This document shows, one piece after another, positions 1 to 26,728 of a stretch of 33,309 nt of DNA. The DNA is from Blastocystis sp. Blastoise (taxonomy: Eukaryota; Protista; Bigyra: Opalinata). The stretch's first letter is position 1, and the number at the start of each line of letters is the position of its first letter. The stretch covers positions 1-33,309 of the forward strand of contig JBBPEB010000016.1 of the NCBI GenBank assembly GCA_039096225.1, in the 5' to 3' direction. The translations under genes were made by a program, and so were the position numbers. The notes beneath the pieces are model-generated. The model saw only the letters and a list, made by a program, of their open reading frames with translations. It searched no databases and was not told where the DNA came from.

Positions 1-10
1 TTACACTCCG
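1..10 (-). tRNA. trnP: probable 5' end of tRNA-Pro, truncated by window start
   Basis: Reverse complement CGGAGTGTAA resembles the CGG.. 5' start typical of tRNA-Pro. It follows trnM in a tRNA cluster, and trnP is otherwise absent. The anticodon is not visible. Confidence 0.4.
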
Positions 11-15
11 TTACA

Positions 16-89
16 TAACGGAAGAGGGATTTGAACCCACAACTTATAGATTATGAATCTATTGTTCTAACCAAATAAACTATTCCGCT
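16..89 (-). tRNA. trnM: tRNA-Met(CAU), elongator type
   Basis: Cloverleaf AGCGGAA/TTCCGTT, anticodon arm ATAGA-TTCATAA-TCTAT, GGTTCAAATCC T arm. Confidence 0.9.
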
Positions 90-93
90 TTTT

Positions 94-459
94 TTATTCC
101 CATTCAAGAGCACCTTTTTTCCATTCAAAAATGAAACCTAAAGTTAATATAAAAATAAAAATCATCATTGACCAAAAACCAGTATATGATATAACATTTA
201 AAGATAAAGCCCAAGGAAATAAAAATGTTACTTCTAAATCAAACATTAAAAATAATATAGCTACTAAATAGAAATGAACATCAAAAGTATCTCTAGCATC
301 ATCAAATGGATTAAAACCACATTCATAAGCTATTAATTTATTAGAATCTTCAGCTTTTTTACCTAAATAATATGAAAAAGCAAAAGCTAAATAAGATAAA
401 ACAACACACATTATTAAAAATATAAATATAGGACCTAATTCAGAATATAATAATTTCAT
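94..459 (-). CDS. nad3: NADH dehydrogenase subunit 3
   Basis: YECGFNPF, FYLVAILFLMFDLE and EWKKGALEW motifs. Confidence 0.98.
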   Translation of the reverse strand: MKLLYSELGPIFIFLIMCVVLSYLAFAFSYYLGKKAEDSNKLIAYECGFNPFDDARDTFDVHFYLVAILFLMFDLEVTFLFPWALSLNVISYTGFWSMMIFIFILTLGFIFEWKKGALEWE

Positions 460-466
460 TTATTTA

Positions 467-539
467 CGGAAAAGACGAGATTTGAACTCGCAATCGCTAG
501 CGTGACAAGCTAATATTCTAACCATTAAACTACTTCTCC
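467..539 (-). tRNA. trnD: tRNA-Asp(GUC)
   Basis: GGAGAAG/CTTTTCC acceptor, anticodon loop TTGTCAC. Confidence 0.95.
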
Positions 540-545
540 TTTAAT

Positions 546-619
546 TAAGTCTAGTAAGACTTGAACTTACAACATTGCCGTTATGAGCGGCATGTTCTAA
601 CCATTTAAACTATAGACTT
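546..619 (-). tRNA. trnI: tRNA-Ile(CAU), lysidine type (reads AUA)
   Basis: AAGTCTA/TAGACTT acceptor and TGCCG-CTCATAA-CGGCA anticodon arm resemble organellar trnI-CAU. Separate elongator and initiator Met tRNAs are also present. Confidence 0.8.
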
Positions 620-623
620 TTAT

Positions 624-705
624 TACTCGCTACAAGACTTGAACTTGTAATCTCATAAGAGGCAGATTTTAAGTCTGCTGTGTCTACCAATTCCACCAAG
701 CGAGC
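624..705 (-). tRNA. trnL: tRNA-Leu(UAA)
   Basis: GCAGA-CTTAAAA-TCTGC anticodon arm, long variable arm. Confidence 0.95.
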
Positions 706-708
706 TTC

Positions 709-820
709 ACTTATCTTTTAAACTATGTTTCTCCATTGCTGAATATCTAATAGTATTTTCAATCTTTTAACAATTCAAGTTCGACATGTGTTTGAGTTAT
801 ATAATTAAATTAAGATAAGT
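709..820 (-). rRNA. rrn5: divergent mitochondrial 5S rRNA
   Basis: 112 nt closed by a 9-bp terminal helix ACTTATCTT/AAGATAAGT. Internal ACTCAAACACATGTCGAACTTGAATTGTTAA matches the 5S helix III/loop C pattern (CCCAT..CGAAC..G..GTTAA). The 3' part ATACT...GGAGAAACATAG resembles loop E. Flanked tightly by tRNAs. Confidence 0.75.
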
Positions 821-822
821 TA

Positions 823-907: not shown

Positions 908-1282
908 TTATTTAGATAATTGTGCCATACCATATTTAGAACGTGAAGTTCTTCTATTTAAAACAGCAGCACAATCAAATTTACCACGTATTATTTTATA
1001 ACGAATACCTGGTAAATCTTTACGTCTACCACCTTGAATTAATACAGTTGAATGTTCTTGTAAATTATGACCTTCACCAGGTATATAAGCATTAACTATA
1101 TTTTTATTACGTAATAATACACGGGCAATTTTACGTTTAGCTGAATTTGGTTTTTTAGGAGTTTTTATATAAACACTTAAACATATACCTTTTTTTTGAG
1201 GATTTTGTGTTAAAGATGGTGTTTTTGTAAATTTTTTTTTATTAATTCTTTTATGTTTTATAATTTGATTTAAAGTAGTCAT
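908..1282 (-). CDS. rps12: ribosomal protein S12
   Basis: [21 protein letters not shown] and DLPG motifs. Confidence 0.98.
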
Positions 1283-1470: not shown

Positions 1471-1938
1471 TTAATTGAACCAACGAAAATGTGCAAATGA
1501 TCTGTTTTCATAAGCTTTTTTATGAATATCATTACGTTTTTGAATACTAGAACTAGTACCTTGATAAGATTCAAAAATTTCATTAGCTATATATTGAGCA
1601 TAAGTATTATCATTTGTAAAATGTTTTTGATTTGCAGTATCTAATATTAAATTTATAGCATTTTTAAAACGTCTGTTATGATTTAAAGGTATAGGAACAT
1701 TGATATTAGATTTAACAATTTTAATTGTTCTTAAATCAAAAAGAGGTTCTACTTTTAATAAAGCTATATTTAAGATATAATAAGGATCTATATTTTGGTC
1801 AAGTTTTTTTAAAAAAAATAAAATATTATTAAACATAGTTAAAGCTGTAGCTTTTTTACCTTTTTTCATTAATAATTTTATAAAAAAAGTTTTAATTTCA
1901 TTTTTTTTAGTAATATTGATTTGTAAATTATTTTGCAT
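1471..1938 (-). CDS. rps7: ribosomal protein S7
   Basis: LMKKGKKATA and C-terminal IHKKAYENRSFAHFRW. Confidence 0.95.
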   Translation of the reverse strand: MQNNLQINITKKNEIKTFFIKLLMKKGKKATALTMFNNILFFLKKLDQNIDPYYILNIALLKVEPLFDLRTIKIVKSNINVPIPLNHNRRFKNAINLILDTANQKHFTNDNTYAQYIANEIFESYQGTSSSIQKRNDIHKKAYENRSFAHFRWFN

Positions 1939-2109: not shown

Positions 2110-4098
2110 TTATTTTCTAATTATAATATAAAATATTAATAAAACTATACTTATTTTTAATAAACTTAAAACAAAAGTAGAATTTAATAAAATTAAACAA
2201 GTAACACCTATTAAAAATACAAAAGCATAATTATAGAAGAAACCTGATTGTAATTCAATTATATTATGACTTATATTTGATAATAAATTAGATAAACCTC
2301 TAGGACCTAATAAATTAAAGAAACCTTTATCTAATAATTTATAAGTATATTCAAAACTTACAAATAAAGTACTTTGATATAAAGTTTCACTATATAATTT
2401 ATCAAAGAACCATTTTCTATTTAAGAAAGTATATAACATCATACCTACTTTTGTAGTTTTTAATGAATGAATTTCATTAGTTAAGAAACCATAACATATA
2501 TAACCAAAAATAGCACCTAAAATACTTAAAATTACTGGAAGTATTTTAAAGAAGAATGGTAAAAATTCAGCTTCTAATATAAAAGTATTACTTGGTAATA
2601 TAAATATAGCATTATTCCAGAAATTAGTACCTAAACCTATAAACATATCTTTAGTAATATAACCTATAAATATACTTAATATAGATAAAATAATTAAAGG
2701 TAAAGCCATAATTAATGGAGCATCATGAGCTTTTAATATAGTTTGTTTATAAGCATTTGTTTTAGTTAAAAATGTTAAAAAGATTAAACGAACTGAATAA
2801 AAAGCAGTAAAGAAAGCTGATAAAGTACCTAACCAATAAGCAAAATGACTACTTATAGTATATTTAGCAAAAGCTAATTCTAGAATAACATCTTTTGAAT
2901 AATAACCTGATAAGAATGGGAAACCTAATAAAGCTAAAGAACCTATTAATATCATAGAATAAGTTAAAGGTAAAATTTTTAATAAACCACCCATTTTACG
3001 CATATCTTGTTCATCATTCATTGCATGAATTACTGAACCAGCACTTAAGAATAATAAAGCTTTAAAGAATGCATGATTTGCTAAATGGAATATACCTACA
3101 TTATAACCTGAAATACCACAAGCAAAAATCATATAACCTAATTGACTACAAGTTGAATAAGCAATTACTCTTTTCATATCATTTTGTAATAAACCTGTAG
3201 TAGCTGCAAAGAAAGTAGTAATAGCACCTATAACAGTAACTACTATAAGAGCATTTGAAGCATATTCAAATAAAGGAGAACATCTACTTATCATAAATAC
3301 ACCGGCAGTAACCATGGTTGCAGCATGAATTAAAGCTGAAACAGGTGTAGGACCTTCCATTGCATCTGGTAACCATACATGTAAACCAACTTGAGCTGAT
3401 TTACCTACAGCACCTATAAATAAAAATATACATAAAAAATTTAAAAGGTCAAAATTCATATTAAAAAAATTAAAGTTAATATTACTAAAATTAGGAGCTA
3501 AAGCAAATACTGTAGAATAATCTAAAGTTTTAAAGGTAAAGAAAACTGTTAACATACCAATCATTAAACCAAAATCACCTACTCTATTTACAAGCATAGC
3601 TTTTATAGCAGCTTTATTTGCTTGAATTCTAGTAAACCAGAAATTAATTAATAAATAAGAACATAAACCAACACCTTCCCATCCTACGAACATTTGAACA
3701 AAATTATCACCAGTTACAAGAACAAGCATAAAGAAAGTGAATAATGATAAATAAGACATAAATCTAGGTAAATGAGGATCACCATGCATATAACCTATAG
3801 AATATAAATGTACTAAAGATGATATACAAGTAACTACAACAAGCATAGTAACAGTTAAAGTATCAAATTGAAAACTCCAATTAATATTTACTAAATCTGA
3901 AACCATCCATTTACATAAATCTATATAGCATACACTACCACATAGAGCTACTTCATAGAAAGCAAAGCAACTAATTAAAAAAGTTATAAATATAGTACTT
4001 GTAGTTAAAATAGTACTTCCTTTTTCAGTTAAAAATCTACCAAACATACCTGAAATAAACGCACTTAATAAAGGTAAGAAAACGATTAATAAATACAT
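2110..4098 (-). CDS. nad5: NADH dehydrogenase subunit 5 (start corrected to [10 protein letters not shown], 662 aa)
   Basis: [22 protein letters not shown] and [10 protein letters not shown] motifs. The first 27 codons of the ORF-track call lie in or immediately beside trnS(UGA). Confidence 0.98.
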
Positions 4099-4101
4099 AA
4101 A

Positions 4102-4185
4102 CGGATAAAGAGGGATTCGAACCCCCGATATCATAGATATACCTGTTTTCAAGACAGGCACCTTCAACCACTCGGTCATTTATCC
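4102..4185 (-). tRNA. trnS: tRNA-Ser(UGA)
   Basis: GGATAAA/TTTATCC acceptor, CCTGT-CTTGAAA-ACAGG arm, long variable arm. Confidence 0.95.
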
Positions 4186-4195: not shown

Positions 4196-4615
4196 TTAAA
4201 AATAAATTTTTCTTTTTTTACAACCATTAAAAGGTTTAGGTGTAATATCATAAATATTGTTAATTTTAATACCTGTTTCAATTAGACCTTTAAAAATACC
4301 AGTTAATTTTACAGGAATACCTTTTATTTTGATATTAACATTAGTAAATCCTTGTTTTTTTAATTCATCACCTATGAATTTACCTAAAGAAATTGCGGCA
4401 TAAAAAGATTTTTTTTTAAAACCGGAAAATCCTAAAGCACCTATTGACATTATTCTAGTTTTATTTGTTTTATATGTAACAAATGTATTATTAGTATCAC
4501 ATTTGATATATATATTTATATTTTTATTTGATTTAATTTGTTTATGAGTTACTATATTATAAAATGTTAAATTTTTTGTTTTTGGTTTTTGTGTTAAACG
4601 AGTCATTTGTATCAT
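4196..4615 (-). CDS. rps11: ribosomal protein S11
   Basis: NNTFVT, SIGALGFSGFKKKS and DITPKPFNGC motifs. Confidence 0.93.
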   Translation of the reverse strand: MIQMTRLTQKPKTKNLTFYNIVTHKQIKSNKNINIYIKCDTNNTFVTYKTNKTRIMSIGALGFSGFKKKSFYAAISLGKFIGDELKKQGFTNVNIKIKGIPVKLTGIFKGLIETGIKINNIYDITPKPFNGCKKRKIYF

Positions 4616-5621: not shown

Positions 5622-5693
5622 TGAAATATAGCCAAGTGGTAAGGCACCGGTCTTTGACATCGGTATACAAAGGTTCGAATCCTTTTATTTCTA
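5622..5693 (+). tRNA. trnQ: tRNA-Gln(UUG)
   Basis: TAGCCAAGTGGTAAGGC D arm, CCGGT-CTTTGAC-ATCGG anticodon arm. The 3' end overlaps the nad2 stop codon on the other strand. Confidence 0.92.
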
Positions 5694-7175
5694 TAAACAT
5701 AAGAATAAAGATATATAATGAGTTATTATAAATAAAGTATTAGGATTTAAACATAAAAATACTAAAACTAATGTGAAAGCACTTATAATTACAGCTAAAT
5801 TTTTATTAATAGAAGTATAAACGTAATTATTATTAGTTGATTCAAAATACATTATTTTTATAAATCTTATATAATAAAAAGCAGTAATTACACTAATTAC
5901 AATAGCAAATATAGCTGGTAATAAAACATTATTTTCTACGCATACAAAGAAAGTATAGAATTTTGCTAAGAAACCTGCTAGAGGTGGTATACCTGCCATA
6001 GAAAACATTATAATAGTTAAACTGATACCTAATAAATAATTGTTTTTAAATAAATCAGCGAAATCAGTAATATATTTAACTTTATTATTAACTATTAATA
6101 ATATAGCCCAAATAGCAATAGTAGTTATTAAATAAACTATAAAATAAAATAATAAACTTTGAACACCTTGTATAGTACCAGTTGATAAACCTAAAATCAT
6201 ATAACCTATATGGGTTACTGAACTATAAGTTAAAAAGCGTTTAATTTTATATTGTTGTAATGCAAAGAATGCAGATACTATAATAGATAATAAAGATACT
6301 AATATAAAAATTAATTGCCATTGATCTATAAAAGCATAAAAAGTTGACATTAAAATTCTAGATAATAAAGCTATTAAAGCAAATTTAGGAGCTATATTAA
6401 AAAACATAGTTATGATACTAGGAGCACCTTCATATACATCTGGAGCCCATACATGGAATGGAGCTATGGTTAATTTAAAGAAGAAAGCTGATAAAATAAA
6501 ACAAATAGCTGTAAAAGTTAATTTATCAAAAGAACTTGTAGTAAAAAAATAAGATAATTCAGTTAAATTAGTTAAACCTGTAGTACCATAAAGTAAAGCT
6601 ATACCAAATAATAAGAAACCTGAAATTAAAGAACCTGTTATAAAATATTTTAAACCAGCTTCACATGAATATAAATTACTTTTTCTTGAAGAAGCTAATA
6701 CATAAAAACAGAAACTTTGCATTTCTAAAGTAATATATAAATGTAAGAAACTATTACAATGTAAAGTTAATAAAATACTAAATATAGATATATATAATAA
6801 TATTAAATATTCATAATTATACATAGTATCAGTATTTAAAAAATTATTTATAGATAATAAGTATATTACAGAAATAATTAATATGATTAATTCTATTAAA
6901 GTTAAAGCATAATTCATAGTATACATACCATCAAAAATTAATCTAGTTAATGTAGTTTCTTTACATAAAAGAATTATTACAAAAATTAAAGATAAAATAA
7001 ATAGATTATTAATAATAGTAGAAATGTAAGGTGTTCTATAATTATTTTTATAAATATTTAAATATTTACTAGATAAAAAAATACCTACACATAATAAAGT
7101 TAATACTGAAAATATAAAAAAAATTTCTGGAACAATAAATTTAATTTCTTCGAAAAATATTGATGCGAAAGTCAT
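5691..7175 (-). CDS. nad2: NADH dehydrogenase subunit 2
   Basis: EAGLKYF, FKLTIAPFHVWAPDVYEGAP and SMAGIPPLAGF. Confidence 0.97.
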   Translation of the reverse strand: MTFASIFFEEIKFIVPEIFFIFSVLTLLCVGIFLSSKYLNIYKNNYRTPYISTIINNLFILSLIFVIILLCKETTLTRLIFDGMYTMNYALTLIELIILIISVIYLLSINNFLNTDTMYNYEYLILLYISIFSILLTLHCNSFLHLYITLEMQSFCFYVLASSRKSNLYSCEAGLKYFITGSLISGFLLFGIALLYGTTGLTNLTELSYFFTTSSFDKLTFTAICFILSAFFFKLTIAPFHVWAPDVYEGAPSIITMFFNIAPKFALIALLSRILMSTFYAFIDQWQLIFILVSLLSIIVSAFFALQQYKIKRFLTYSSVTHIGYMILGLSTGTIQGVQSLLFYFIVYLITTIAIWAILLIVNNKVKYITDFADLFKNNYLLGISLTIIMFSMAGIPPLAGFLAKFYTFFVCVENNVLLPAIFAIVISVITAFYYIRFIKIMYFESTNNNYVYTSINKNLAVIISAFTLVLVFLCLNPNTLFIITHYISLFLCL

Positions 7176-7280: not shown

Positions 7281-9401
7281 ATGTTAGCTAAAATAGATAA
7301 CATAGTATCTTCTTATAAAACAGATATAAGTATTTTAAGTCATTCAGAAATGTTAGGTATAACTTTACCACGTTTTTGTTATCATAATAAACTTATGATA
7401 TCTGCTAATTGTCGTGTATGTTTATGTATAGTTGAAAAAGAAAGAAAACCTGTTACTGCTTGTTCAACCATGTTAAGACCAGGTATAGTAATATCTTTAA
7501 ATACACCTCAAGTATCTAAATTAAGAGAAGATGTTCTTGAATTTTTATTAATAAATCACCCTTTAGATTGTCCTACATGTGATCAAGGTGGTGAATGTGA
7601 TTTACAAGATATGTCTTATTATTTCGGTTTAGATAAAGGTAGAAATTTTGGTATAAATAAAAAAGCTATTTTAAATAAAGATAAAGGTCCTTTAATAAAA
7701 ACTGTAATGAATAGATGTATTAATTGTACTCGTTGTGTTCGTTTTGTAAATGAAATAGCAGGTAGCATTTGCTTAGGTTCTATAGGTAGAGGTAGAACTA
7801 CTGAAATTGGTAGTTATGTTGATTCTTTTTATGATTTCGAAATTTCAGGTAATTTAATTGATGTTTGTCCTGTAGGTGCTTTAACTTCTAAACCTTATGC
7901 TTTTACTAATCGTCCTTGGGAATTAAAAAGTACTCATAGTATAGATGTAATGGATGGTTTAGGTTCAAGTATTACTATAAATACAAGAGGTTCAAATATT
8001 AGTAGAATTATACCTAGAAATAATGATTTAGTAAATGAAGAATGGATTTCAGATAAAATAAGATTTTCATATGATGGTTTAAATTATCAAAGAATATCAA
8101 ATCCTATGATTAGAATTAATAATAAATTACAAATGTTTGATTGGGATAAAGCTTTAAATTATTTACAATCAAATATTAATTCTGATAATTTTAAAGTAAA
8201 ATTAAATAATAATACTTTAAATTATAATGTAGGTTGTTATTTTGGTGAATTATTAGATAATGAAACTATTTTTATGATGTCAAATATGTTAAATCAATTA
8301 GGTTGTTCTAATAAATATACTAAAGAAGATTTATTTAATATAAATAATGATTTAATGTCAAATTATCGTTTTAATACAACTTTAAAAAATATAAGTAAAT
8401 CTGATATGTGTATTTTAATAGGTACTAATCCTAAATTAGAAGCTTCTGTATTAAATATACGTTTAAGAAAATTATATACAGATTCTAATACTCCTATAAT
8501 AACTATAGGTAGTAAAATTAATTTAACTTATCCTTCATATAATTTAGGTTTTACTTTAAATTCTTTAATAAAATTTACTGAAGGTAGATCTGATTTATGT
8601 AAAGTATTACAAACTAAAAAAAGACCATCTTTAATTATAGGTTCAAATATCTTTATAAATAAAGCTATATATAATACTGTAATATATTTAAATAATATTT
8701 TAAAATTATCTTTAAAAAATATGGATACAAATTGGAATTATTTTAATATATTACATGATAATATAAGTTCTGTAGGTAAATATGATATAAGTTTAACTAC
8801 TAAATATAAAAAAAATATTGAAGATTTAAATTGTTTATTTTTATTAAATGTAGATAATGATTTTGATAATATAATTAGAAATAAAAATTTAACAAATACT
8901 TTTGTAATTTATCAAGGTCATCATTATAATAAATATATAAATATGTCTGATTTAGTATTACCTAATAAAACTTTTGTAGAAAAAGATGGTACTTATACAA
9001 ATACTGAAGGTCGTACTTTATTTGCAAGACATTGTGGTGTAAATTCTTTAATAAATACTCGTGAAGATTGGTCTTTATTAAATATTTTAGGTAGTATTTT
9101 ATTTAAAAAAGTAAATAATAATATGAAAAATTATATTGTAAATTCTAAACATGATTTAATAAATACTTCTGATATATTTAATGCATCTTTATGGAGAAAT
9201 AATCCTAATTTTAAAAATGATAATAATGTATCTGAATCTGTATTTACTAAATTTATAAATAATGCTTTTATAAATAATAAAGTAAATAATTATACATTTA
9301 GTCCTTTAATATATAATTTTTATTTAACTAATAATATAAGTAGAGCTTCACGTACTATGGCTGAATGTTCTAAATCTTTAATAAAAAAAACTAACTATTA
9401 A
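7281..9401 (+). CDS. nad11: NADH dehydrogenase subunit 11 (75 kDa), unsplit
   Basis: Fe-S motifs RFCYH..CRVC..C, HPLDCPTCDQGGEC and RCINCTRC..CPVGAL. Confidence 0.98.
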   Translation: MLAKIDNIVSSYKTDISILSHSEMLGITLPRFCYHNKLMISANCRVCLCIVEKERKPVTACSTMLRPGIVISLNTPQVSKLREDVLEFLLINHPLDCPTCDQGGECDLQDMSYYFGLDKGRNFGINKKAILNKDKGPLIKTVMNRCINCTRCVRFVNEIAGSICLGSIGRGRTTEIGSYVDSFYDFEISGNLIDVCPVGALTSKPYAFTNRPWELKSTHSIDVMDGLGSSITINTRGSNISRIIPRNNDLVNEEWISDKIRFSYDGLNYQRISNPMIRINNKLQMFDWDKALNYLQSNINSDNFKVKLNNNTLNYNVGCYFGELLDNETIFMMSNMLNQLGCSNKYTKEDLFNINNDLMSNYRFNTTLKNISKSDMCILIGTNPKLEASVLNIRLRKLYTDSNTPIITIGSKINLTYPSYNLGFTLNSLIKFTEGRSDLCKVLQTKKRPSLIIGSNIFINKAIYNTVIYLNNILKLSLKNMDTNWNYFNILHDNISSVGKYDISLTTKYKKNIEDLNCLFLLNVDNDFDNIIRNKNLTNTFVIYQGHHYNKYINMSDLVLPNKTFVEKDGTYTNTEGRTLFARHCGVNSLINTREDWSLLNILGSILFKKVNNNMKNYIVNSKHDLINTSDIFNASLWRNNPNFKNDNNVSESVFTKFINNAFINNKVNNYTFSPLIYNFYLTNNISRASRTMAECSKSLIKKTNY

Positions 9402-11672: not shown

Positions 11673-11874
11673 TTTTTTTTTTGAAGATAAAACACAAATA
11701 TCATTTTGTATTTTTATTTATATATCTATTATATTAATTGTTTAATATATTTTTAATTTAATTTTAATTTATTTTTATATTTATTTTTAAATATAAAATT
11801 ATTTCATTAATTGTAAATTCATTTCTTTATAAATTAAAATAGATTAATCCATTTAGCTTTTATCTAAATATTAT

Positions 11875-14230: not shown

Positions 14231-14236
14231 TTTTAG

Positions 14237-14309
14237 GGCGCTTAACAGGATTTGAACCCATACTACTTAGTACCACAAACTAAAGTTTTACCATTAAACT
14301 ATAAGCGCC
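14237..14309 (-). tRNA. trnH: tRNA-His(GUG) with encoded G-1
   Basis: TTAGT-TTGTGGT-ACTAA arm, G-1:C73 pair. Confidence 0.94.
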
Positions 14310-15026: not shown

Positions 15027-15039
15027 TGTTATTAATTCT

Positions 15040-15369
15040 TTATCTTATTTTACGTGAAGTTTTCGCATTTGAACGTGTTCTTTGACCTCTTGCAGGTAAT
15101 CCTTGTACTAGACGCATACCTGTAAAAGTTTTATTTATTTTTTTGTCATTTTTATTATCTTCAATTAAATAGGTTAAACGATCATCCACGTAATAATTAT
15201 CTTTTATTGTTTTTTTTAAAATTTCTTGTAAAAATTTATTTAAATTTTGATTATTAGCTTTTTTTATATTAATACCATATTTATTACATAAAAAAAGAAT
15301 TTGATTTTGATTAATTCCATAATAATTATTTAATACATTTAATATTTTTAATTCACTAGTTTTTTTCAT
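15040..15369 (-). CDS. rps13: ribosomal protein S13
   Basis: YGI and G.R...GLPARGQRTRSNAKT. Confidence 0.96.
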   Translation of the reverse strand: MKKTSELKILNVLNNYYGINQNQILFLCNKYGINIKKANNQNLNKFLQEILKKTIKDNYYVDDRLTYLIEDNKNDKKINKTFTGMRLVQGLPARGQRTRSNAKTSRKIR

Positions 15370-17789: not shown

Positions 17790-17863
17790 GTCAAAGTGGT
17801 GAAATTGGTATACACGTAAGTTTTAGAAACTTAATTTTAAGAGTTCAAGTCTCTTCTTTGATA
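17790..17863 (+). tRNA. trnL: tRNA-Leu(UAG) lacking the long variable arm
   Basis: GTCAAAG/CTTTGAT acceptor, Leu-type D arm GTGAAATTGGTATACAC, TAAGT-TTTAGAA-ACTTA arm, 5-nt variable loop. Confidence 0.88.
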
Positions 17864-17883: not shown

Positions 17884-19065
17884 ATGCTTAAAACTACGCA
17901 TTTAAAAAGTTTTACGATTAACTTCGGACCACAACATCCTGCAACTCATGGTGTTCTGCGTTTAGTTTTAGAATTACATGGTGAAATTGTAAGAAAAGCA
18001 GATCCTCATATAGGTTTTTTACATAGAGGTACTGAAAAATTAATAGAACATAAAACTTACTTACAAGCTTTACCTTATTTTGATCGTCTAGATTATATTG
18101 CTATGTTAGCAAATGAACATGGTTATGCTCTAGCTGTTGAAAAATTATTACAATGTAATGTTCCTAAAAGAGCTCAATATATTAGAGTAATTTTTGTAGA
18201 ACTTACTAGAATATTAAATCATTTAATTAGTATAGGTTCACATGCACTTGATATAGGTTCAACTACCGTTATTATATGGTTATTTGAAGAACGTGAAAAA
18301 ATATTTGAATTTTGTGAACGTTTAACTGGTGCAAGAATGCATGCTAATTTTATTAGACCAGGTGGAGTACGCCAAGACTTACCTTTAGGTTTATTAAGTG
18401 ATATATATATGTTTTGTACTACTTTTAGTGCTTCTATAGATGAAGTAGAAGAATTATTAACTAATAGTCGTATATGGAAAGAACGTTTAGTAGATATAGC
18501 TAAAATAACCAAACAAGAAGCTTGTGATTGGGGTTTTAGTGGTGTTATGTTAAGAAGTACTGGTGTTAATTGGGATTTAAGAAAAACTTTTCCTTATGAA
18601 ATTTATAATGAAGTAAATTTTCAAATTCCTGTAGGTACTAATGGTGATAACTATGATAGATATTTAATTAGACTTGAAGAAATGAGACAAAGTGTTTATA
18701 TTATTATGCAATGTATTAATCAAATACCTAATGGTCCTATTAAAGCTGATGATTATAAAATAAGTTTACCTTCAAAATTACAAATGAAAAGATCAATGGA
18801 AAGTTTAATTAGTCATTTTAAACTATTTTCAGAAGGTTTTGTAGTTCCTCAAGGTGAAGTTTATTCTACAATTGAAGCTCCAAAAGGTGAATTTGGTGTA
18901 TATATTGTATCAAATAATACAAACAAACCTTATAGATGCCATATTAAAGCACCTAGTTTCTTACATTTACAAGGTGTTGATTTTATGTCTAAAGGTCATT
19001 TAATTGCAGATATAGTTACTGTTATCGGTACTATAGATATAGACTTTGGTGAAATAGATAAATAA
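17884..19065 (+). CDS. nad7: NADH dehydrogenase subunit 7 (49 kDa)
   Basis: [27 protein letters not shown] and EAPKGE. Confidence 0.98.
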
Positions 19066-19297
19066 TCCGAATACAATGTTCCTATTAAATTTAATCATCT
19101 ATACAATTATCTTTATATTTTATTTATATTAATTTCTTCGTTCTAATTCATAATTAAATATCTAACTTTCCATCTTAACATAAATATTTCTTGGCAAAAT
19201 CAAATATTTATACTAATCTAAATTTCAATAAACATATTGTGAAATTAAATTTTGTAATATTATTTTATCATAATTATATTAAATAACTAAAAAAATC

Positions 19298-19384
19298 ATG
19301 AACTGGCCTGTATTTTTTACTGTAATAGCTATCCTAATAATATTTTTAATTGTATTATATTTTATAGATGAACATTATCTATAA
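19298..19384 (+). CDS. possible single-TM micro-protein orf28
   Basis: MNWPVFFTVIAILIIFLIVLYFIDEHYL*, co-directional with nad7 and orf163. Confidence 0.3.
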   Translation: MNWPVFFTVIAILIIFLIVLYFIDEHYL

Positions 19385-19453
19385 TACAATTAAATAGAGT
19401 TTTAAAATTAAAAAAGAATTCTATTTGTTTTTAAAACAAAATCATAAAAAAAA

Positions 19454-19945
19454 ATGATGCTTTTATCTAAACAAATTGTTTATAAAAAAACTCAAATTTG
19501 TACATGTATAAGTCTTAATAGTGTAGTAGCTTATAGTACAAATTGTAAAAAACTAAAACGTTTTACAACTGGAGATTCAATTTTTGATAATTATAAATAT
19601 TTAGCTTTATATCATACTCCTTTAAATAGTAAACCGTTAATGCATACTTATAAAGTTAAATTTTTACCTACTTTAGATTATTTACGTGAAATTTATCCTG
19701 GATTAACAAATAATGTGACTATATTTTATACTAATGATAAATTAGAATTTGATAAATTTATACATAAATATTCTCAATCTTTACATATAATGATTGTATT
19801 TATTGAAAAACAATATATATGTTGTGATTTTAATCGTCTTAATATAAATTCATTTAGTGATTTTCTTAATTTTTATTTATTTTCTTATAAAAAAAGATTT
19901 TATACTTTAAAAAAATTAAGTGAAACTAAAAAAGTAGTTAAATAA
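19454..19945 (+). CDS. unassigned orf163, possibly a highly divergent rpl10-like protein
   Basis: Intact 163-codon soluble basic ORF downstream of nad7. Size fits L10, but no diagnostic motif is recognised. Confidence 0.6.
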   Translation: MMLLSKQIVYKKTQICTCISLNSVVAYSTNCKKLKRFTTGDSIFDNYKYLALYHTPLNSKPLMHTYKVKFLPTLDYLREIYPGLTNNVTIFYTNDKLEFDKFIHKYSQSLHIMIVFIEKQYICCDFNRLNINSFSDFLNFYLFSYKKRFYTLKKLSETKKVVK

Positions 19946-20276
19946 ATATATACCTTTTATAAGTATAATAATATTTGTAACTTTATTTGTAAATATATTA
20001 TTAGATAATAATATAATAACTATATTTACATCTGATAATGAAAATTTATTTAATTGGTTTTCAATTATCAATGAAATTAGTAATATTAAAGTTATAGGAC
20101 AAACTTTATTTACTAATTATGCTTTTTATTTTATTTTAGCTGGTTTTGTATTATTAATTGGTATAATGGGTTCTATTATTTTAAGTAGAAGAACCAATAA
20201 AAATATTAGAAGATATCAATTAGTATATCAACAATTATCTAGAAATATTGAAAATGCTGTATTTTTAATAGATTAA
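19938..20276 (+). pseudogene. nad6: 3' half of nad6, with no start codon or N-terminal helices
   Basis: Frame reads LNKYIPFISIIIFVTLFVNILLDNNIITIFTSDNENLFNWFSIINEISNIKVIGQTLFTNYAFYFILAGFVLLIGIMGSIILSRRTNKNIRRYQLVYQQLSRNIENAVFLID*. The NI..IG..L.T.Y...F...G..LL..M.G.I.L motif marks the Nad6 C-terminus. In-frame TAG at 19935. Confidence 0.88.
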
Positions 20277-20293
20277 TTTTATAATTTTCAATA

Positions 20294-20366
20294 GCGTTCT
20301 TAGCTTAATGGACAGAGTAACAGTCTTCTAAATTGTTTTGTATCAGTTCGATTCTGATAGAACGCT
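20294..20366 (+). tRNA. trnR: tRNA-Arg(UCU)
   Basis: GCGTTCT/AGAACGC acceptor, ACAGT-CTTCTAA-ATTGT arm. Confidence 0.93.
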
Positions 20367-20433
20367 TATAAGTTTTTGGGATTATTTTTTTAAATTATCC
20401 CATTAATATTTATATATATATTGGAGAAGGAAG

Positions 20434-21245
20434 AAATTTTAGAGTTTAATCCTGGCTCCGAATAAACGCTAGTAGTATGCTTGAACACATGCAAGTCGAA
20501 TGTTTTTTTGTTTTTTAAAAAGACATGGCGTACGGGTGAGTAAATGAAAAAATTTCTACCTAAAGGATCAATGGAATATTGAATATTTAAAGATTTTTTC
20601 GCCTTTAGATTAGTTTTTTCTAGGATTAGGTAGTTGGTAATGTAAAAGATTACCAAGCCAACAATCCTTAGCTGGTTTTTGCGAACGATCAGTCACATCG
20701 GAATTGAAATAAGGTCCGAACTCTAACGAGGCAGCAGTGAGGAATATTGGACAATGAACGAAAGTTTGATCCAGCAATACTACGTAAGTGATGAATGTTT
20801 TGTTACTGTAAAACTTAAATTATATTTAGGATTATGACCTTTATATAAGAAGTCCCGGCAAACTCTGTGCCAGCAGCCGCGGTAATACAGAGGGGGCGAG
20901 CGTTATTCGTATTTACTGGGCGTAAAGTGTTTTGAGACGATTTTTTAAGTTAAAAAGGAAATTCCAAAGCTTAACTTTGAAAGAATTTTTAATACTGAAA
21001 ATTTAGAGTTTATTACAGGATAATAGAATTTTTGACAGGAGGGGTGAAATCCAAAGATATCAAAAAGAATGCCATTTGGCGAAGGCAATTATCTAGTAAA
21101 AAACTGACGTTGATTAACGAAAGCATGGGGAGCAAATAGGATTCGATACCCTAGTAGTCCATGCTGTAAACTATGAATATTAATTATTGTAAATTTTTTT
21201 GCAGTAGTTTAGTTAACGTATTAATATTCCGCCTGGGAAGTAAAA

Positions 21246-21296
<51 letters not shown>

Positions 21297-21895
21297 ACAT
21301 GTGGTTTAATCCGATAACCCGCGTAAAATCTTACCAGTTCTTGACTTAATTTAGTTTTAACGTTATTATTTCAAAAAAATAATAATTATAAATTACAGGT
21401 GTTGCATGGCTGTCGTCAGCTCGTGTTGTGAAATGTTAAGTTCATTCTTTTAACGAGCGCAACCTCTTATTTAAATCACGATTTTAAAAAAGAAGTAAAT
21501 TATAATTACTTTAATTTAAAAGTTAAATTTAAATATATTATGAGATGAATGCCAAGTCATTATGACCCTTATGAACTGGGCTACACATGTGTTACAATGT
21601 TTTTAACAAAAAGATGCAATTATGAGAATAGGAGCAAATCTTTAAAGAAAAACAAAGTTCGGATTATAGATTGAAATTCATCTATATGAAGTTGGAATCG
21701 CTAGTAATCGTGCATTAGAACGGCACGGTGAATATGTACTTGAGCCTTGTACACACCGCCCGTCACATTAGAAAAATTATTTTTGTACGAAATATTGATA
21801 ATACAACATATTATTAATATTACTATAAAAATTTTGATTTTAATGAAGTCGTAACAAGGTAGCCGTATGGGAACATGTGGCTGGAATTATTATAT
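20434..21895 (+). rRNA. rns: small subunit rRNA (ends approximate)
   Basis: AGAGTTTAATCCTGGCTC, GTGCCAGCAGCCGCGGTAATAC, AAACTCAAAGGAATTGACGG and AAGTCGTAACAAGGT. Confidence 0.98.
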
Positions 21896-21917
21896 TTAAA
21901 AAAACTAAAGACTTATA

Positions 21918-21989
21918 AGGTAATTAACTCAATGGTAGAGTATTTCGCTTACAACGAAGAAGTTAATGGTTCAAGTCCATTATTACCTA
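21918..21989 (+). tRNA. trnV: tRNA-Val(UAC)
   Basis: AGGTAAT/ATTACCT acceptor, anticodon loop CTTACAA. Confidence 0.94.
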
Positions 21990-21990
21990 A

Positions 21991-22057
21991 ATCAAGGTGC
22001 TAGGTAGCTACTTAGGCTCATGCCCTAATTATTTAGGTTCAATCCCTAACCTTGATA
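21991..22057 (+). tRNA. trnfM: tRNA-Met(CAU), probable initiator, with reduced D arm (67 nt)
   Basis: ATCAAGG/CCTTGAT acceptor, TTAGG-CTCATGC-CCTAA anticodon arm, TTAGG-TTCAATC-CCTAA T arm. Confidence 0.8.
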
Positions 22058-22065
22058 TAACATTA

Positions 22066-23786
22066 GCATTTAAGTACAAAGAGCATTAGAAGGATGCCTA
22101 GGTATTTATTTATGGACGTTTTATCGAAAATTTATGGCTAATTAATGTAATCATACCATAAGATTCCTGAGGGGAAACCTTTTCAAAATGAAAAGTTTTT
22201 TATACAAGAATAACTAAAATATAGTGAACTGAAACATCTAAGTAACTATAGAAAAGATATCAAACGAAATTTCGTAAGTAGTGGCGAACGAACACGAATC
22301 AGGCTCAAATTTTTATGAAATTTTATAGAATAAATCCAAAGATGGTATTAAAAGACCAGTTTCTATGAAATTAATAAATTGTATTAAGTAAAACGGAACA
22401 CGTGAAATTCTGTTTGAATATAGGGGGACCATCCTCTAAGCCTAAATAAAATAAATAACCGATAGTGAACAAGTACTGTGAAGGAAAGGTGAAAAAGCTT
22501 ATTTATATATTATAGTGAAATAGAACCTGAAATCTAATGCTCTATAACAATTGGAGCTTAAAATAGTGACAATGTACCTTTTGTATAATGGACCAGCAAC
22601 TTTATTAATTTAGCAAGCTTAATTCGATAGAAATAGGCGTAGTGAAAGCAAATTTAAATAAAATTTTAAGTTAAATTAATAAGACCCGAAATCAAGTGAT
22701 CTAACTATGAATAGGTTGACTTTAATGTAAAAGTTAAACGAAGACCGAACTCGTATCTGTTGCAAAAGATTGAGATGATTTGTGGTTAGGGGTGAAAGGC
22801 TAATCAAACTTGAAGATAGCTGGCTTTCTGCGAAATCTATTTAGGTAGAGTGTCAAAATTTAATATAATGGGGTAGAGAACTCGATAAAAAAGGGGGGCC
22901 ATTATGGTCTTACTAATTTTAATGAAACTTCAAATACATTATATATTAATTTTGGCAAACAGACTTTGAGTGCTAAGATTCAAAGTCGAGAGGGAAACAG
23001 CCCAGATTGTATGTTAAGGCCTCTAAATTTATTCTTATCGTATAAGGATTTATATAAATAATGACAACCAAAAGATAGGCTCAGAAGCAGCCATTCTTTA
23101 AAGAAAGCGTAATTGCTCATTGGTCTAGTTTATATATTCCGAAGATGTATAGAGACTAAAGAATAATGCCGAAACAGCAAATTTAATTTTAGATTAAATG
23201 GTAGCAGAACGTTTTGTATGCTTAAAAGTTAGAATTGAAAAATTTTAATTTAGTATCAAAAGTGATAATGCTGGTATAAGTAGAATAAACAATGTAACAA
23301 AACATTGTCGCCGAAAATCCAAGGTTTTTAAAATAAAAATAAAGTTTTTTATAATATACGGTCTCTAAGATAAATATGAGAATTTTTATTGATGAGTTAT
23401 ATTAATATATTTTTAAAAATTATGAATACAATTTTAAAAAATAGAGTATTGTTTTTATTTTTGTATTGATAGTTACGCGAAATAAATATTAATTCAAACC
23501 GTACTAAAACCGACACTGGTGGATTAGTAGAAAATACTAAGGCGTAGAGATAATCATAGCGAAGGAACTAGGCAAAATGACTTCGTAACTTCGGGAGAAG
23601 AAGTTCCTATAAATTAATTATTTATAGGAGGCACACAATAGGGGGTAGCGACTGTTTAATAAAAACACAAGACTATGCTAAATCGAAAGATGATGTATAT
23701 GGTCTGACATCTGCCAAATGCTGTGTAGTTAAATTCAAAAGTTAAATGCTTTTGATATAAACAGCAGTCAATGGCGGCCGTAACTC

Positions 23787-23817
<31 letters not shown>

Positions 23818-24714
23818 AATTAATTGTTGACGCGCATGAATGATGTAACGACTTCCCCACTGTCTCCGCTATGAACTCTTTGAAATTGAATTATTCGTGA
23901 AGATGCGAATTGCATATGGCTAGACGGTAAGACCCTGTGCACCTTTACTACAATTATACACTGATTACATTTATAAAAATGTGTAGAATAAGTGGGAGTT
24001 TAAAAAACGACAATGAAATACCACTCATTTTTATTATTTGTAGCTAACTAAAAGGAAAACTGTATATTTGGTAGTTTGACTGGGGCGGTAACCTCCTAAA
24101 ATGTAACGGAGGCATATAAAGGTAAACTGAAATTATTTTGTAAATAATGATAGAGTGCAATGGCATAAGTTTGCTTGACTGTGAGATTGACAAATCAAAC
24201 AGAAACGAAAGTTGATCATAGTGACCCGGTAGTTCTTTATGGAAAGGCTATCGATCAATGGATAAAAGGTACGCCAGGGATAACAGGCTGATGACTCTCT
24301 CGAGTTCTTATCGACGGAGTAGTTTGGCACCTCGATGTCGGCCCATCACATCCTAGAGCTGTAGAAGGTTCTAAGGGTTTGACTGTTCGTCAATTAAAGT
24401 GGTACGCGAGCTGGGTTTAAAACGTCGTGAGACAGTTTTGTCCCTATCTACCATATGTTTTAGAAAAAAAAGGAACGATAATCTTAGTACGAGAGGACCA
24501 GATTAGGTTGATCAATAGTGCATCGGTTATTTTAACTCAAAGTATAGCCGAGTAGCCAAATCAATAAAAAATAATTACTGAAAGCATATAGGTAAGAATT
24601 TTATTCCTAATTTTTCTTTTAAAGAAATGTAGAAGACTACTACATTAATAGGCTTAAAGTGTAAATATGGTAACATATTAGCTTATAAGTACTAATTTTT
24701 CAATACTTAAATGC
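22066..24714 (+). rRNA. rnl: large subunit rRNA, no introns seen
   Basis: Terminal helix GCATTTAAGTA/TACTTAAATGC; GAACTGAAACATCTAAGTA, GGCACCTCGATGTCGG and sarcin-ricin loop AGTACGAGAGGAC. Confidence 0.98.
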
Positions 24715-24719
24715 AATAA

Positions 24720-24802
24720 AGAACAATCGCTTAGTGGCTATAGCAACAGACTGTAAATCTGTGGAATTCTATTCATCGTGGGTTCGAGTCCCTCTTGTTC
24801 TA
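24720..24802 (+). tRNA. trnY: tRNA-Tyr(GUA)
   Basis: ACAGA-CTGTAAA-TCTGT arm, long variable arm. Confidence 0.94.
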
Positions 24803-24886
24803 TTTAAAAATTTTTTATTACAAAAATAGTTAAAGCTAATATATATTTAAAGATATTTTTAATTATTTTTTGTAATTTTAATTAAA

Positions 24887-26350
24887 ATGTATAATATTCT
24901 GATCTCTTTAATAATTTTACCTTTAATAGGATCTTTTATAATAAGTTTATTAGATTTCAATAATATAAAAACAATAAGAAATGTTGCTTTATATACAACA
25001 ACTATTACTTTCTTTATATCATTATTACTTTTAGTATTTTTTGATAAAAGTAATTTTGGTTTTCAATTTTTAACTTCAACTAATTGGTTAAATGCTATAA
25101 ATTTAAATTTTATTTTAGGTATAGATGGTATTTCATTATTTTTTATTTTATTAACTACCTTTTTATTTCCTATTTGTATTTTATCTAGTTGGAATTATAT
25201 TTTACATAATACTAAATTATTTTATATAAGTTTTTTAATTATGGAAACTATTTTAGTATTAGTATTTAGTGTATTAGATGTTGTATTTTTCTATATGTTC
25301 TTTGAAAGTGTTTTAATCCCAATGTTTATTATTATAGGTATATGGGGTGCTAGAGAAAGAAAAATATTTGCTTCTTATATGTTTTTCTTATATACACTTT
25401 TAGGTTCAGTATTAATGTTAATTGGTATATTTGTAATGTTTTGTTATACTGGTACTTCAAGTTATGAAGTATTATTAACTTGTAATTTTAATGAAAATTT
25501 ACAATTATTATTATGGTTAGCTTTCTTCTTATCATTTGCTGTTAAAGTACCTATGGTACCTTTCCACATATGGTTACCTGAAGCTCATGTAGAAGCTCCT
25601 ACACCAGGTTCTGTTATATTAGCAGGTGTTTTATTAAAATTAGGTACTTATGGTTTTATGAGATTTTCATTACCTTTATTTCCTTATGCTAATATATATT
25701 TTACTCCTTTTGTATTTACTTTAAGTTTATTAGGTGTAATTTATGCTTCATTAATTGCTATAAGACAAACTGATTTAAAAAGAATTATTGCTTATGCTTC
25801 AGTAGCTCATATGAATTTAATAATGATTGGTTTATTTTCAAATAATATTACTGCTATAGAAGGTGCTTTATTACAAATGTTAAGTCATGGTTTAGTAGCT
25901 GGTGCTTTATTCTTAGTTGTAGGTGTTTTATATGAACGTTTTCATAGTCGTTTAATAAAATATTATAGTGGTTTAGTACAAGTTATGCCTATGTTTGTAT
26001 TATTCTTCTTATTCTTCACTTTAGCTAACATAGCTGTACCTGGTACTAGTAGTTTTGTTGGTGAATTTTTAATCTTTATTGGTACTTTTCAAAATCATGC
26101 AGCAGTTACTTTCTTATCAGCTACTGGTATGTTATTTGGTGGTATTTATTCTTTATGGTTATATAATAGAGTAGCTTATGGTAATGTAAAAATAAAATAT
26201 GTAACTAATTTTGTAGATTTAAATAAAAGAGAAGTTTTCATGTTCTTAATTATATTAATTGTAGTTGTATTTGCAGGTATTTATCCTAAATTCTTTTTAG
26301 ATTACATACATGCTTCAGTAACAGGTTTAGTTAATTTTATGAATATATAA
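24887..26350 (+). CDS. nad4: NADH dehydrogenase subunit 4
   Basis: KVPMVPFHIWLPEAHVEAPT.GSVILAGVLLKLG and DLKRIIAYASVAHM. Confidence 0.98.
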   Translation: MYNILISLIILPLIGSFIISLLDFNNIKTIRNVALYTTTITFFISLLLLVFFDKSNFGFQFLTSTNWLNAINLNFILGIDGISLFFILLTTFLFPICILSSWNYILHNTKLFYISFLIMETILVLVFSVLDVVFFYMFFESVLIPMFIIIGIWGARERKIFASYMFFLYTLLGSVLMLIGIFVMFCYTGTSSYEVLLTCNFNENLQLLLWLAFFLSFAVKVPMVPFHIWLPEAHVEAPTPGSVILAGVLLKLGTYGFMRFSLPLFPYANIYFTPFVFTLSLLGVIYASLIAIRQTDLKRIIAYASVAHMNLIMIGLFSNNITAIEGALLQMLSHGLVAGALFLVVGVLYERFHSRLIKYYSGLVQVMPMFVLFFLFFTLANIAVPGTSSFVGEFLIFIGTFQNHAAVTFLSATGMLFGGIYSLWLYNRVAYGNVKIKYVTNFVDLNKREVFMFLIILIVVVFAGIYPKFFLDYIHASVTGLVNFMNI

Positions 26351-26364
26351 TTATATTTTTAAAA

Positions 26365-26436
26365 GGGTTTATAGTTTAATGGTAAAACATTCGACTTTTA
26401 ATCGAAGAAGTTTGGGTTCAAATCCCAATAAACTCA
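26365..26436 (+). tRNA. trnK: tRNA-Lys(UUU)
   Basis: TTCGA-CTTTTAA-TCGAA arm. Confidence 0.95.
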
Positions 26437-26444
26437 ATTTATAA

Positions 26445-26530
26445 GGAAAAATGTCAGAGTGGTAATGAGTTAACCTGCTAAGTTAAAGGAAGTTTAATCT
26501 TCCTCAACGGTTCAAATCCGTTTTTTTCCG
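26445..26530 (+). tRNA. trnS: tRNA-Ser(GCU)
   Basis: TTAAC-CTGCTAA-GTTAA arm, long variable arm. Confidence 0.94.
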
Positions 26531-26728
26531 AAAAATCTTATATTTTAACATAATATTATACTATTATATCATCATCATATCATTAATATGATGGGGGGAT
26601 AAAAAATTCCGTTTTAACAAATAATTAAATTTAATTATTTGTTAAAACGGAATTTTTTATCCCCCCATCATATTAATGATATGATGATGATATAATAGTA
26701 TAATATTATGTTAAAATATAAGATTTTT
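26531..26728. other. non-coding palindrome centre (candidate hairpin telomere or end junction)
   Basis: 99 bp of non-coding DNA on each side of the symmetry axis at 26629/26630, with no loop or spacer. Confidence 0.6.

Follow-up and report, generated by a model that had tools for sequence, protein, structure and literature searches.

A closed 33.6-kb map from Blastocystis sp. Blastoise: very probably a complex-I-only organelle genome with back-to-back inverted repeats

Gene content of the contig

The stretch of DNA considered here, hereafter the window, is the whole of contig JBBPEB010000016.1 (33,309 nt; C9 below), which belongs to the assembly of Blastocystis sp. Blastoise (33,340,088 bases in 34 contigs). 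Genes were assigned from a listing of open reading frames (ORFs) together with Pfam for proteins, Rfam for ribosomal RNAs and ARAGORN for transfer RNAs. The window carries (i) the Pfam-confirmed complex I genes nad1, nad2, nad3, nad4, nad4L, nad5, nad7, nad9, and nad11, (ii) 16 Pfam-supported ribosomal protein genes, namely rps2, 3, 4, 7, 8, 10, 11, 12, 13, 14, and 19 as well as rpl2, 5, 6, 14, and 16, (iii) rns and rnl of bacterial type, each in two copies, and (iv) 25 tRNA genes of 20 species found by ARAGORN, with one more species that this program missed. The matches of rps13 and rps3 remained below the Pfam cut-offs, and both are positioned in the conserved ribosomal gene order. Once the map is closed through a second contig, it very probably represents the complex-I-only genome that the mitochondrion-related organelle (MRO) of Blastocystis carries, with two back-to-back inverted repeats of 6,687 nt.

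An earlier reading of this DNA, made from the sequence only, had proposed essentially this gene inventory, and Pfam, Rfam, and ARAGORN bear it out. They likewise uphold its estimate of about 26.6 kb of non-redundant sequence, positions 26630-33309 being the exact reverse complement of 19950-26629, as well as its statement that no gap is large enough for cox, cob, or atp: the unassigned gaps reach a maximum of 388 nt, too little to conceal a respiratory gene anywhere in the window. Every one of the 26 complete protein genes terminates in TAA or TAG and none contains an in-frame TGA, while in the Nad7 and Nad4 alignments CUN falls at conserved Leu columns, ATA at Ile, and AGA or CGT at Arg. From this agreement between codons and columns, and from the lack of in-frame TGA, the genetic code is standard. 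A reassignment of CUN, prompted by a trnL(tag) without a long variable arm, was ruled out by the occurrence of CUN at conserved Leu positions.

The features of the window are as follows, with the strand in brackets; C12 refers to the second contig and the pig-gut relative to a lineage from gut metagenomes, both described further below.

1-15 (-): trnP(tgg), 3' part; ARAGORN on the C12 extension, the remainder lying beyond base 1 on C12
16-89 (-): trnM(cat); ARAGORN, Rfam
94-459 (-): nad3; PF00507
467-705 (-): trnD(gtc), trnM(cat), trnL(taa); ARAGORN
706-822 (-): candidate divergent mitochondrial 5S rRNA (rrn5-like); slot, loop-C-like motif, terminal helix
823-894 (-): trnN(gtt); ARAGORN
908-1282 (-): rps12; PF00164
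1312-1384 (-): trnW(cca); ARAGORN
1471-1938 (-): rps7; PF00177
1940-2088 (-): trnE(ttc), trnF(gaa); ARAGORN
2110-4179 (-): nad5; PF00361, PF00662, PF06455; 5' end overlaps trnS(tga)
4102-4185: trnS(tga); ARAGORN
4196-4615 (-): rps11; PF00411
4621-5214 (-): nad9; PF00329
5252-5584 (-): rps10; PF00338
5622-5693 (+): trnQ(ttg); ARAGORN
5691-7175 (-): nad2; PF00361; position conserved in the pig-gut relative
7281-9401 (+): nad11; six NuoG-type domains (Pfam)
9405-10391 (+): nad1; PF00146
10382-10684 (+): nad4L; PF00420
10773-11297 (-): rpl5; PF00673
11298-11672 (-): rpl14; PF00238
11875-13816 (-): rps2, rpl6, rps8, rps14; PF00318, PF00347, PF00410, PF00253
13820-13970 (-): trnA(tgc), trnC(gca); ARAGORN
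13973-14149 (-): orf58; same length and place in the pig-gut relative; no Pfam match
14157-14308 (-): trnI(gat), trnH(gtg); ARAGORN
14319-15369 (-): rps4 (235 aa, ATG start) and rps13; PF01479, PF00416
15458-17783 (+): rpl2, rps19, rps3, rpl16; Pfam
17790-17863 (+): trnL(tag), without long variable arm; ARAGORN, Rfam
17884-19065 (+): nad7; PF00346
19454-19945 (+): orf163, at the position of Blastocystis orf160 downstream of nad7; no Pfam match
19950-26629 (+): inverted repeat arm A; true inner limit on the closed map at 19943
19950-20276 (+): nad6, headless 3' part (108 codons and the stop), innermost in arm A; PF00499, reading frame
20293-20367 (+): trnR(tct); ARAGORN
20434-21896 (+): rns; RF00177, 982 bits
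21918-21989 (+): trnV(tac); ARAGORN
21991-22057 (+): third tRNA(CAU), with reduced D arm; fold, conservation in the pig-gut relative
22067-24715 (+): rnl; RF02541, 1764 bits
24720-24802 (+): trnY(gta); ARAGORN
24887-26350 (+): nad4; PF00361; 92% identical to nad4 of the pig-gut relative
26365-26530 (+): trnK(ttt), trnS(gct); ARAGORN
26531-26728: palindrome centre, AT-rich, zero spacer, axis between 26629 and 26630
26630-33309 (-): inverted repeat arm B, exact mirror of arm A (trnS, trnK, nad4, trnY, rnl, tRNA(CAU), trnV, rns, trnR, nad6 3' part)

Closure of the map through nad6

What the window holds of nad6 is its 3' part (19950-20276 and the mirror 32983-33309), not its 5' half. A hidden Markov model (HMM) search of the assembly for Nad6 located its N-terminal half on another contig, C12 (19,368 bp), and its C-terminal half where the two C9 arms have their inner ends. 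C12 matches C9:1-19028 in reverse complement with 100% identity and then continues for 340 further bases. These extra bases carry the remainder of trnP(tgg) and the start of nad6, and C12 shares its final 8 bases with the reverse-complemented end of C9 in such a way that an uninterrupted nad6 of 195 codons runs across the junction, i.e., the 3' part in arm B completes the functional gene. With a net addition of 332 bases, the closed map reaches 33,641 bp, of which about 20.3 kb are single-copy and the remainder is taken up by two identical inverted repeats, each 6,687 nt long (19943-26629 and 26630-33316). Its gene complement comprises ten complex I subunits (nad1-7, 4L, 9, 11), 16 mitoribosomal proteins, orf163, and orf58, together with rns, rnl, a putative divergent 5S rRNA, and 22 tRNA species; trnG, trnT, and trnR(ACG) are not on the closed map. 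The caution once attached to the window as incomplete was thus right for trnP and nad6, both cut in the window and both completed on C12, and wrong for trnG and trnR(ACG), which are absent from the closed map itself and not merely outside the window.

C12 is thereby a second, redundant organelle contig in the assembly. The NCBI record bears nuclear-style gene calls on these organelle contigs, among which a 224-aa "hypothetical protein" of Blastocystis sp. Blastoise (WA158_002599) covers most of orf163, carries the nad6 domain, and appears to fuse orf163 with the nad6 fragment. A public organelle sequence thus sits inside a nuclear assembly and could be re-annotated at once.

Respiratory gene set

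Six-frame HMM searches of all 34 contigs gave zero matches to COX1 (PF00115), COX2 (PF00116), COX3 (PF00510), cytochrome b (PF00033), cytochrome c1, ATP6 (PF00119), F1-gamma, and TatC. As a positive control, the poorly conserved and AT-rich nad6 was recovered at 31-64 bits by the same method, which indicates adequate sensitivity for organelle genes. Respective to the nuclear contigs, a [FeFe]-hydrogenase with a ferredoxin-type domain (Fer4) was found at 269 bits, along with the alternative oxidase (AOX), genes of the pyruvate:ferredoxin oxidoreductase (PFO) type at four loci, the 51-kDa complex I subunit NDUFV1, and two copies of SDHA, the flavoprotein of succinate dehydrogenase (SDH); the nuclear hydrogenase, PFO, and AOX predicted from the organelle sequence were therefore all recovered. 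The presence of complex I, complex II, and AOX, with neither a cytochrome chain nor an F-type ATP synthase, is the Blastocystis pattern, and the gene set agrees with this pattern as stated in PMC2997541 and in an excerpt of PMC6204527. By analogy with classical Blastocystis, complex I would oxidise NADH, pump protons, and so maintain the membrane potential; electrons would pass through quinone to complex II, acting as fumarate reductase, or to AOX; pyruvate would be oxidised by PFO/PNO with the hydrogenase as an electron sink, and ATP would come from substrate-level phosphorylation.

Two arrangements on nuclear contigs deserve mention beside this gene set. About 380 nt upstream of the [FeFe]-hydrogenase ORF (C14:937262-941068), and on the same strand, lies an ORF with the C-terminal thiamine pyrophosphate domain of PFO, the N-terminal PFO domains being found a few kb further upstream (PFO matches at C14:932704-935249); PFO and hydrogenase may form a tandem or a fusion gene there. 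The two SDH flavoprotein matches, of equal score, lie 17 kb apart in inverted orientation at C18:586444-586860 (-) and 603555-603971 (+), which suggests a recent inverted duplication on this nuclear contig.

Taken by itself, the window has two open ends and truncates trnP and nad6, and it could on that account be a fragment of an ordinary aerobic stramenopile mitochondrial DNA (mtDNA), with cox, cob, and atp on a part not seen, as the sequence-only reading itself had cautioned. There is hardly any chance left of this, as the map closes through nad6 with only 332 added bases, the continuation on C12 adds nothing but trnP and the nad6 5' part, cox, cob, and atp occur nowhere in the assembly, and the contigs of the pig-gut relative present the same complete gene set and no further genes. 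The closed gene set and the assembly-wide absences support instead the proposal of an MRO genome of an anaerobic stramenopile of the Blastocystis or Proteromonas kind, and the closed Blastoise map is in all likelihood such a complex-I-only genome. Some points nonetheless weigh against this view. The absences derive from HMM searches of the assembly rather than of the reads, and a very small or divergent gene, e.g., atp8 or atp9, could escape them; the C12/C9 join is predicted from an 8-nt overlap and the continuity of a reading frame rather than from a spanning read; organelle and nuclear contigs are linked by AT-richness in common, by phylogeny, and by having been assembled together from a xenic culture, and not physically; and the function outlined above is transposed from classical Blastocystis.

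Relatives and phylogenetic position

The Nad7 cluster of the window includes a protein found on 221 contigs from pig-gut and other gut metagenomes. This pig-gut lineage has the same gene order as Blastoise and, at the nucleotide level, is 81% identical to the window across the single-copy part and 88% across the repeat; for Nad7 and Nad4 the identity is about 92%. Its single-copy contigs of about 20.0 kb end in exact inverted copies of length k-1, a contig of 26,654 bp comprises the single-copy region and one arm, and another five, 13,180-13,184 bp long and obtained with several assemblers from several samples, are palindromic over their whole length, with a head-to-head nad4 pair and a spacer-free centre homologous to that of the window; a T-run length variant is mirrored on both arms. 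The repeat boundary falls within nad6 in both lineages, albeit at different codons, about 35 codons being duplicated in the pig-gut lineage versus 108 in Blastoise. Of note, the pig-gut lineage carries trnR(acg), absent from Blastoise, and in the public collection 743 indexed blocks contain its nad4. Present in hundreds of public metagenome assemblies, this relative offers a ready marker for an under-recognised Blastocystis lineage.

The next cluster, with Nad7 73% identical, contains 27.9-kb contigs (L030 and L031) with the published layout of the Blastocystis subtypes, i.e., nad7-orf-nad4-rps4 (926 codons)-rps14..rpl5 and rps12-nad3-nad6-rRNAs-rps13. In a quick maximum-likelihood tree of Nad4, the window and the pig-gut lineage are sister to these subtype-layout contigs with 100% SH-aLRT support, and the three together are separated from all other matches; the tree was rooted at midpoint, its metagenomic contigs are anchored by the published subtype layout, and it comprises no named Proteromonas or Cepedea sequences. 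Named Proteromonas, Cepedea, or Blastocystis proteins were not among the best 120 Nad7 or Nad4 matches. The organism is Blastocystis itself and not a new lineage, and Blastocystis sp. Blastoise fits the Russian-tortoise isolate Rus-B, whose nuclear genome is published (Lind et al., 2025; PMC12129017). Its nuclear contig C27 carries at 6838-37575 at least three tandem 18S rRNA genes of about 2,020-2,030 nt. This length probably exceeds what is typical for Blastocystis subtypes.

Inverted repeat and topology

The palindrome noticed in the sequence-only reading proved exact: 26630-33309 mirrors 19950-26629 with zero spacer, giving a perfect palindrome of about 13.4 kb whose arms persist on the closed map, and the repeat carries rns, rnl, nad4, six tRNA genes, and part of nad6. 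On either side of the palindrome centre, a G-run motif lies about 35 nt from the axis, and the cumulative GC skew is at its maximum at the axis and at its minimum near 5-7 kb. In terms of the assembly graph, the single-copy region runs into the repeat on both sides, and the two arms connect through their outer ends.

A perfect palindrome of this kind may be suspected as an artefact of nanopore fold-back reads, in which case the true genome would be a repeat-free circle of about 27 kb. The contig does stop precisely where the mirrored arm stops, the assembly does contain a redundant second contig, and the reads, of nanopore R9 type, were assembled by Flye with the --meta option (Lind et al., 2025; PMC12129017). 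Such an origin is nevertheless highly improbable, as orf163 and the nad6 5' part, two unlike sequences, both adjoin the repeat at its inner end, which needs two copies, and as Illumina-only assemblies from several studies reproduce the repeat in the pig-gut relative, with complete palindromic contigs and with the boundary shifted within nad6. Given these independent assemblies and the shifted boundary, the repeat is a real, evolving feature and not a nanopore artefact.

The joined-arm graph is equally given by a circle and by a linear molecule with hairpin-closed terminal repeats, and the choice between the two is roughly balanced. A 33.6-kb circle, or a concatemer that maps as one, in which the two inverted repeats lie back to back and a small single-copy region is missing, has a little under an even chance: it is the simplest closed path, since the single-copy region leads into the repeat at either end and the axis unites the two repeat copies, the classical Blastocystis MRO genomes map as circles (PMC5203790), and short-read assemblers (k 113-127) ran through the axis, which implies duplex-like continuity over at least about 60 nt on either side. 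Yet a zero-spacer perfect palindrome of 13.4 kb is unusual for a stable circle, long perfect palindromes being generally unstable in duplex circles, and the other opalinates with large repeats are linear. A linear molecule, made of the unique region and 6.7-kb terminal inverted repeats capped by covalently closed hairpins at 26629/26630, is credible to the same degree, just short of even. Reads running round the hairpin would yield the zero-spacer palindrome, so that this would be the Proteromonas and Cepedea architecture with hairpin ends; a perfect zero-spacer palindrome with an AT-rich centre occurs in both Blastoise and the pig-gut relative, the mirrored T-run variant of the latter is expected if one arm templates the other, and the GC skew peaks at the axis. 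Moreover, the nearest relatives studied for topology, Proteromonas (PMC2997541) and Cepedea (PMC9656049), are linear with large terminal repeats, and sequencing of the former stopped abruptly at a short inverted repeat (PMC2997541). On the other hand, every assembly graph obtained here fits a circle equally well, and tailing with terminal deoxynucleotidyl transferase indicated open rather than closed ends in Proteromonas (PMC2997541). A protelomerase homologue (ResT/TelK family, PF16684) was not found in the assembly, a result that decides nothing on hairpin ends.

tRNA genes, 5S candidate, and small ORFs

Between trnV and rnl lies a third tRNA(CAU) (21991-22057 on the plus strand, mirrored in arm B), missed by both ARAGORN and Rfam. 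Its acceptor, anticodon (CAU), and T arms are visible in the fold while the D arm is reduced, and it is nearly invariant with respect to the pig-gut lineage; the sequence-only reading had noted it as an odd tRNA-Met. As the genome uses 346 ATA codons, one of its three tRNA genes with a CAU anticodon probably specifies the lysidine-modified tRNA-Ile. The trnL(tag) gene, of 74 nt, lacks the long variable arm of the other tRNA-Leu in the genome and is present in the pig-gut lineage too.

The 5S candidate corresponds to the 117-nt spacer from trnN to trnL(taa), a slot found in Blastoise, the pig-gut relative, and the classical-subtype contig alike. No Rfam match to 5S rRNA was obtained over 26.7 kb at either the gathering or the E <= 1 threshold, and the mtPerm-5S model on a 141-nt spacer scored 13 bits (E 4.5), below threshold. 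A loop-C-like motif is conserved between Blastoise and the pig-gut relative, and a terminal helix of 9, 11, and 15 bp, different in sequence, closes the slot in the Blastoise, pig-gut, and subtype contigs, as checked in each sequence. A three-way junction appears in two of the three minimum-energy folds, with a fold z-score of only -0.95; RNAalifold on a four-sequence MAFFT alignment of the slot gave nothing useful, the ends being misaligned. A very divergent 5S rRNA has been predicted for Blastocystis (Valach et al., 2014; PMC4267664), and a divergent 5S rRNA at 706-822 is plausible from its sequence features. The 5S rRNA first proposed here therefore keeps the backing of synteny, motif, and a terminal helix covarying in three lineages, but reaches no Rfam threshold. 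In the same way, the description of this genome as a less reduced example stands for its richer tRNA set and falls for the 5S rRNA, which is no marker of it, a 5S-like gene being predicted for classical Blastocystis too.

Between trnC and trnI, orf58 encodes 58 codons of a lysine-rich, basic protein. It has the same length and place in the pig-gut relative (69% identity over 35 residues, E 2e-16), and neither a Pfam match nor a counterpart at the corresponding place in the classical-subtype contig; it may be a 28th protein gene, for an unrecognised small ribosomal protein. As regards orf163, which begins 388 nt after nad7, Pfam gave no match even at E 10, a word-index search found only the ORF itself, and a profile search of 1.84 billion protein representatives returned only three matches, all from its own clade. 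It is homologous to orf124 of the pig-gut relative (E 1e-8), and BLASTP against the classical-subtype ORF gave a non-significant match (E 0.1). The idea of an rpl10-like gene found no support in the Pfam, word-index, or profile searches.

Two spacers complete the picture. At 11673-11874, the 202 nt between rps2 and rpl14, genes that abut in the classical subtype, are about 89% identical to the pig-gut lineage versus an average of 81% in the surrounding coding DNA, and may contain a promoter, a processing region, or a small RNA. At 19066-19453, the 388 nt from nad7 to orf163 are non-coding and absent from the pig-gut lineage; a hydrophobic ORF of 28 codons at about 19299-19385 is probably a chance ORF.

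Novelty and significance

The complex-I-only gene set is a known state for Blastocystis, Proteromonas, and Cepedea, and was as such expected in Blastoise rather than new. In the literature searched, a repeat-bearing Blastocystis MRO genome was not described, and the main text of Lind et al. (2025; PMC12129017) makes no mention of an organelle genome, tRNA, or inverted repeat. Relative to this literature, what looks new is the pair of zero-spacer 6,687-nt inverted repeats, the 22 tRNA species including trnL(UAG), the short rps4, the uninterrupted orf163, and the rearranged gene order. The value of the genome thus resides in what it reveals of a deep-branching clade, namely its architecture and its richer tRNA set, of moderate interest for specialists of organelle evolution.

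The odd rps4, the orf160, and the small tRNA set of the subtypes had led Jacob et al. [quoted passage not shown] The Blastoise and pig-gut genomes answer this call with a short rps4 that has a normal start, a stop-free gene in the orf160 position, and six more tRNA species, and they establish that gene order is not conserved across the genus. Tentatively, and with somewhat more doubt than confidence, the deep-branching lineages, i.e., the tortoise clade and the pig-gut lineage, may be seen as keeping an inverted-repeat MRO chromosome, perhaps linear and hairpin-capped, from which the repeat-free circle of the subtypes with 16 tRNA genes would have derived later by differential loss of duplicates and one inversion, trnL(UAG) having been lost several times.

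Comparison with known systems

The MRO genomes of classical Blastocystis (subtypes ST1-ST9) are fully syntenic circles of 27.7-29.3 kb with 27 genes for proteins and 16 for tRNAs (Jacob et al., 2016; PMC5203790). They have the same protein set as Blastoise, namely ten nad genes, 16 ribosomal protein genes, and one ORF downstream of nad7 (Perez-Brocal and Clark, 2008; Jacob et al., 2016; PMC5203790), likewise lack cox, cob, and atp, and are likewise AT-rich with the standard code. Also shared are the blocks rpl2-rps19-rps3-rpl16-nad7-orf, rps14-rps8-rpl6-rps2-rpl14-rpl5, and rps12-nad3-nad6-rns-rnl, as well as a 5S-like spacer between trnN and trnL(taa), and in the Nad4 tree the subtypes form the closest clade to the window and the pig-gut lineage. 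Blastoise nonetheless departs from the classical architecture of a 27.7-29.3-kb circle with 16 tRNA genes, a fixed order, and no large repeat. Its map amounts to 33.6 kb and includes two inverted repeats of 6.7 kb (rns, rnl, nad4, six tRNA genes), whereas the subtypes have none; its tRNA species number 22 versus 16, the extra ones being two trnS, trnQ, trnR(tct), trnV, and trnL(tag), with trnH present. The subtypes are without trnG, T, S, Q, R, and V, and the loss of trnL(UAG) was inferred to precede the ancestor shared by Blastocystis and Proteromonas (PMC5203790). With 235 aa and an ATG start, rps4 contrasts with the subtype gene of about 926 aa, often devoid of a start codon; orf163 stands apart from nad7 and has no in-frame stops, whereas orf160 of the subtypes overlaps the nad7 end; and orf58 is an extra conserved ORF. 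Compared with the classical-subtype contig L030, the proteins are between 26% (rps14) and 73% (nad7) identical. The gene order is rearranged, so that the complete synteny of the subtypes does not extend to the Blastoise clade; by inspection, the subtype order could be derived from that of Blastoise if one repeat copy lost nad4, the other lost the rRNA genes, and one inversion followed.

Hairpin-ended linear mtDNAs are known from some yeasts of the genera Pichia and Williopsis and from Paramecium. The likeness to Blastoise is that their terminal inverted repeats would read as zero-spacer palindromes; they differ in lineage and gene content, and closed ends are only a candidate in Blastoise.

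Closer to Blastocystis, Proteromonas lacertae (GU563431; PMC2997541) is likewise an opalinate with a complex-I-plus-translation gene set. As in Blastoise, two identical large inverted repeats carry both rRNA genes and many tRNA genes, the genome is rich in tRNA (23 species), and a short inverted repeat is found where sequencing stopped. It differs by its size of 48.7 kb, its experimentally established linearity, its 15.6-kb repeats starting at nad11, four ORFs without identity including orf1636, and the reported lack of trnL(tag); the Blastoise repeats, in comparison, are of 6.7 kb, begin inside nad6, and have outer ends through which the assemblies read. Cepedea longa (PMC9656049) is also reported as linear, with rRNA and tRNA genes in large inverted repeats and with no cox, cob, or atp, and differs by its 62.4 kb, higher GC content, TGA read as Trp, many ORFs without identity, and central tandem repeats. 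Through its large zero-spacer inverted repeat, Blastoise connects the genus Blastocystis with the linear genomes of Proteromonas and Cepedea, which also bear repeats.

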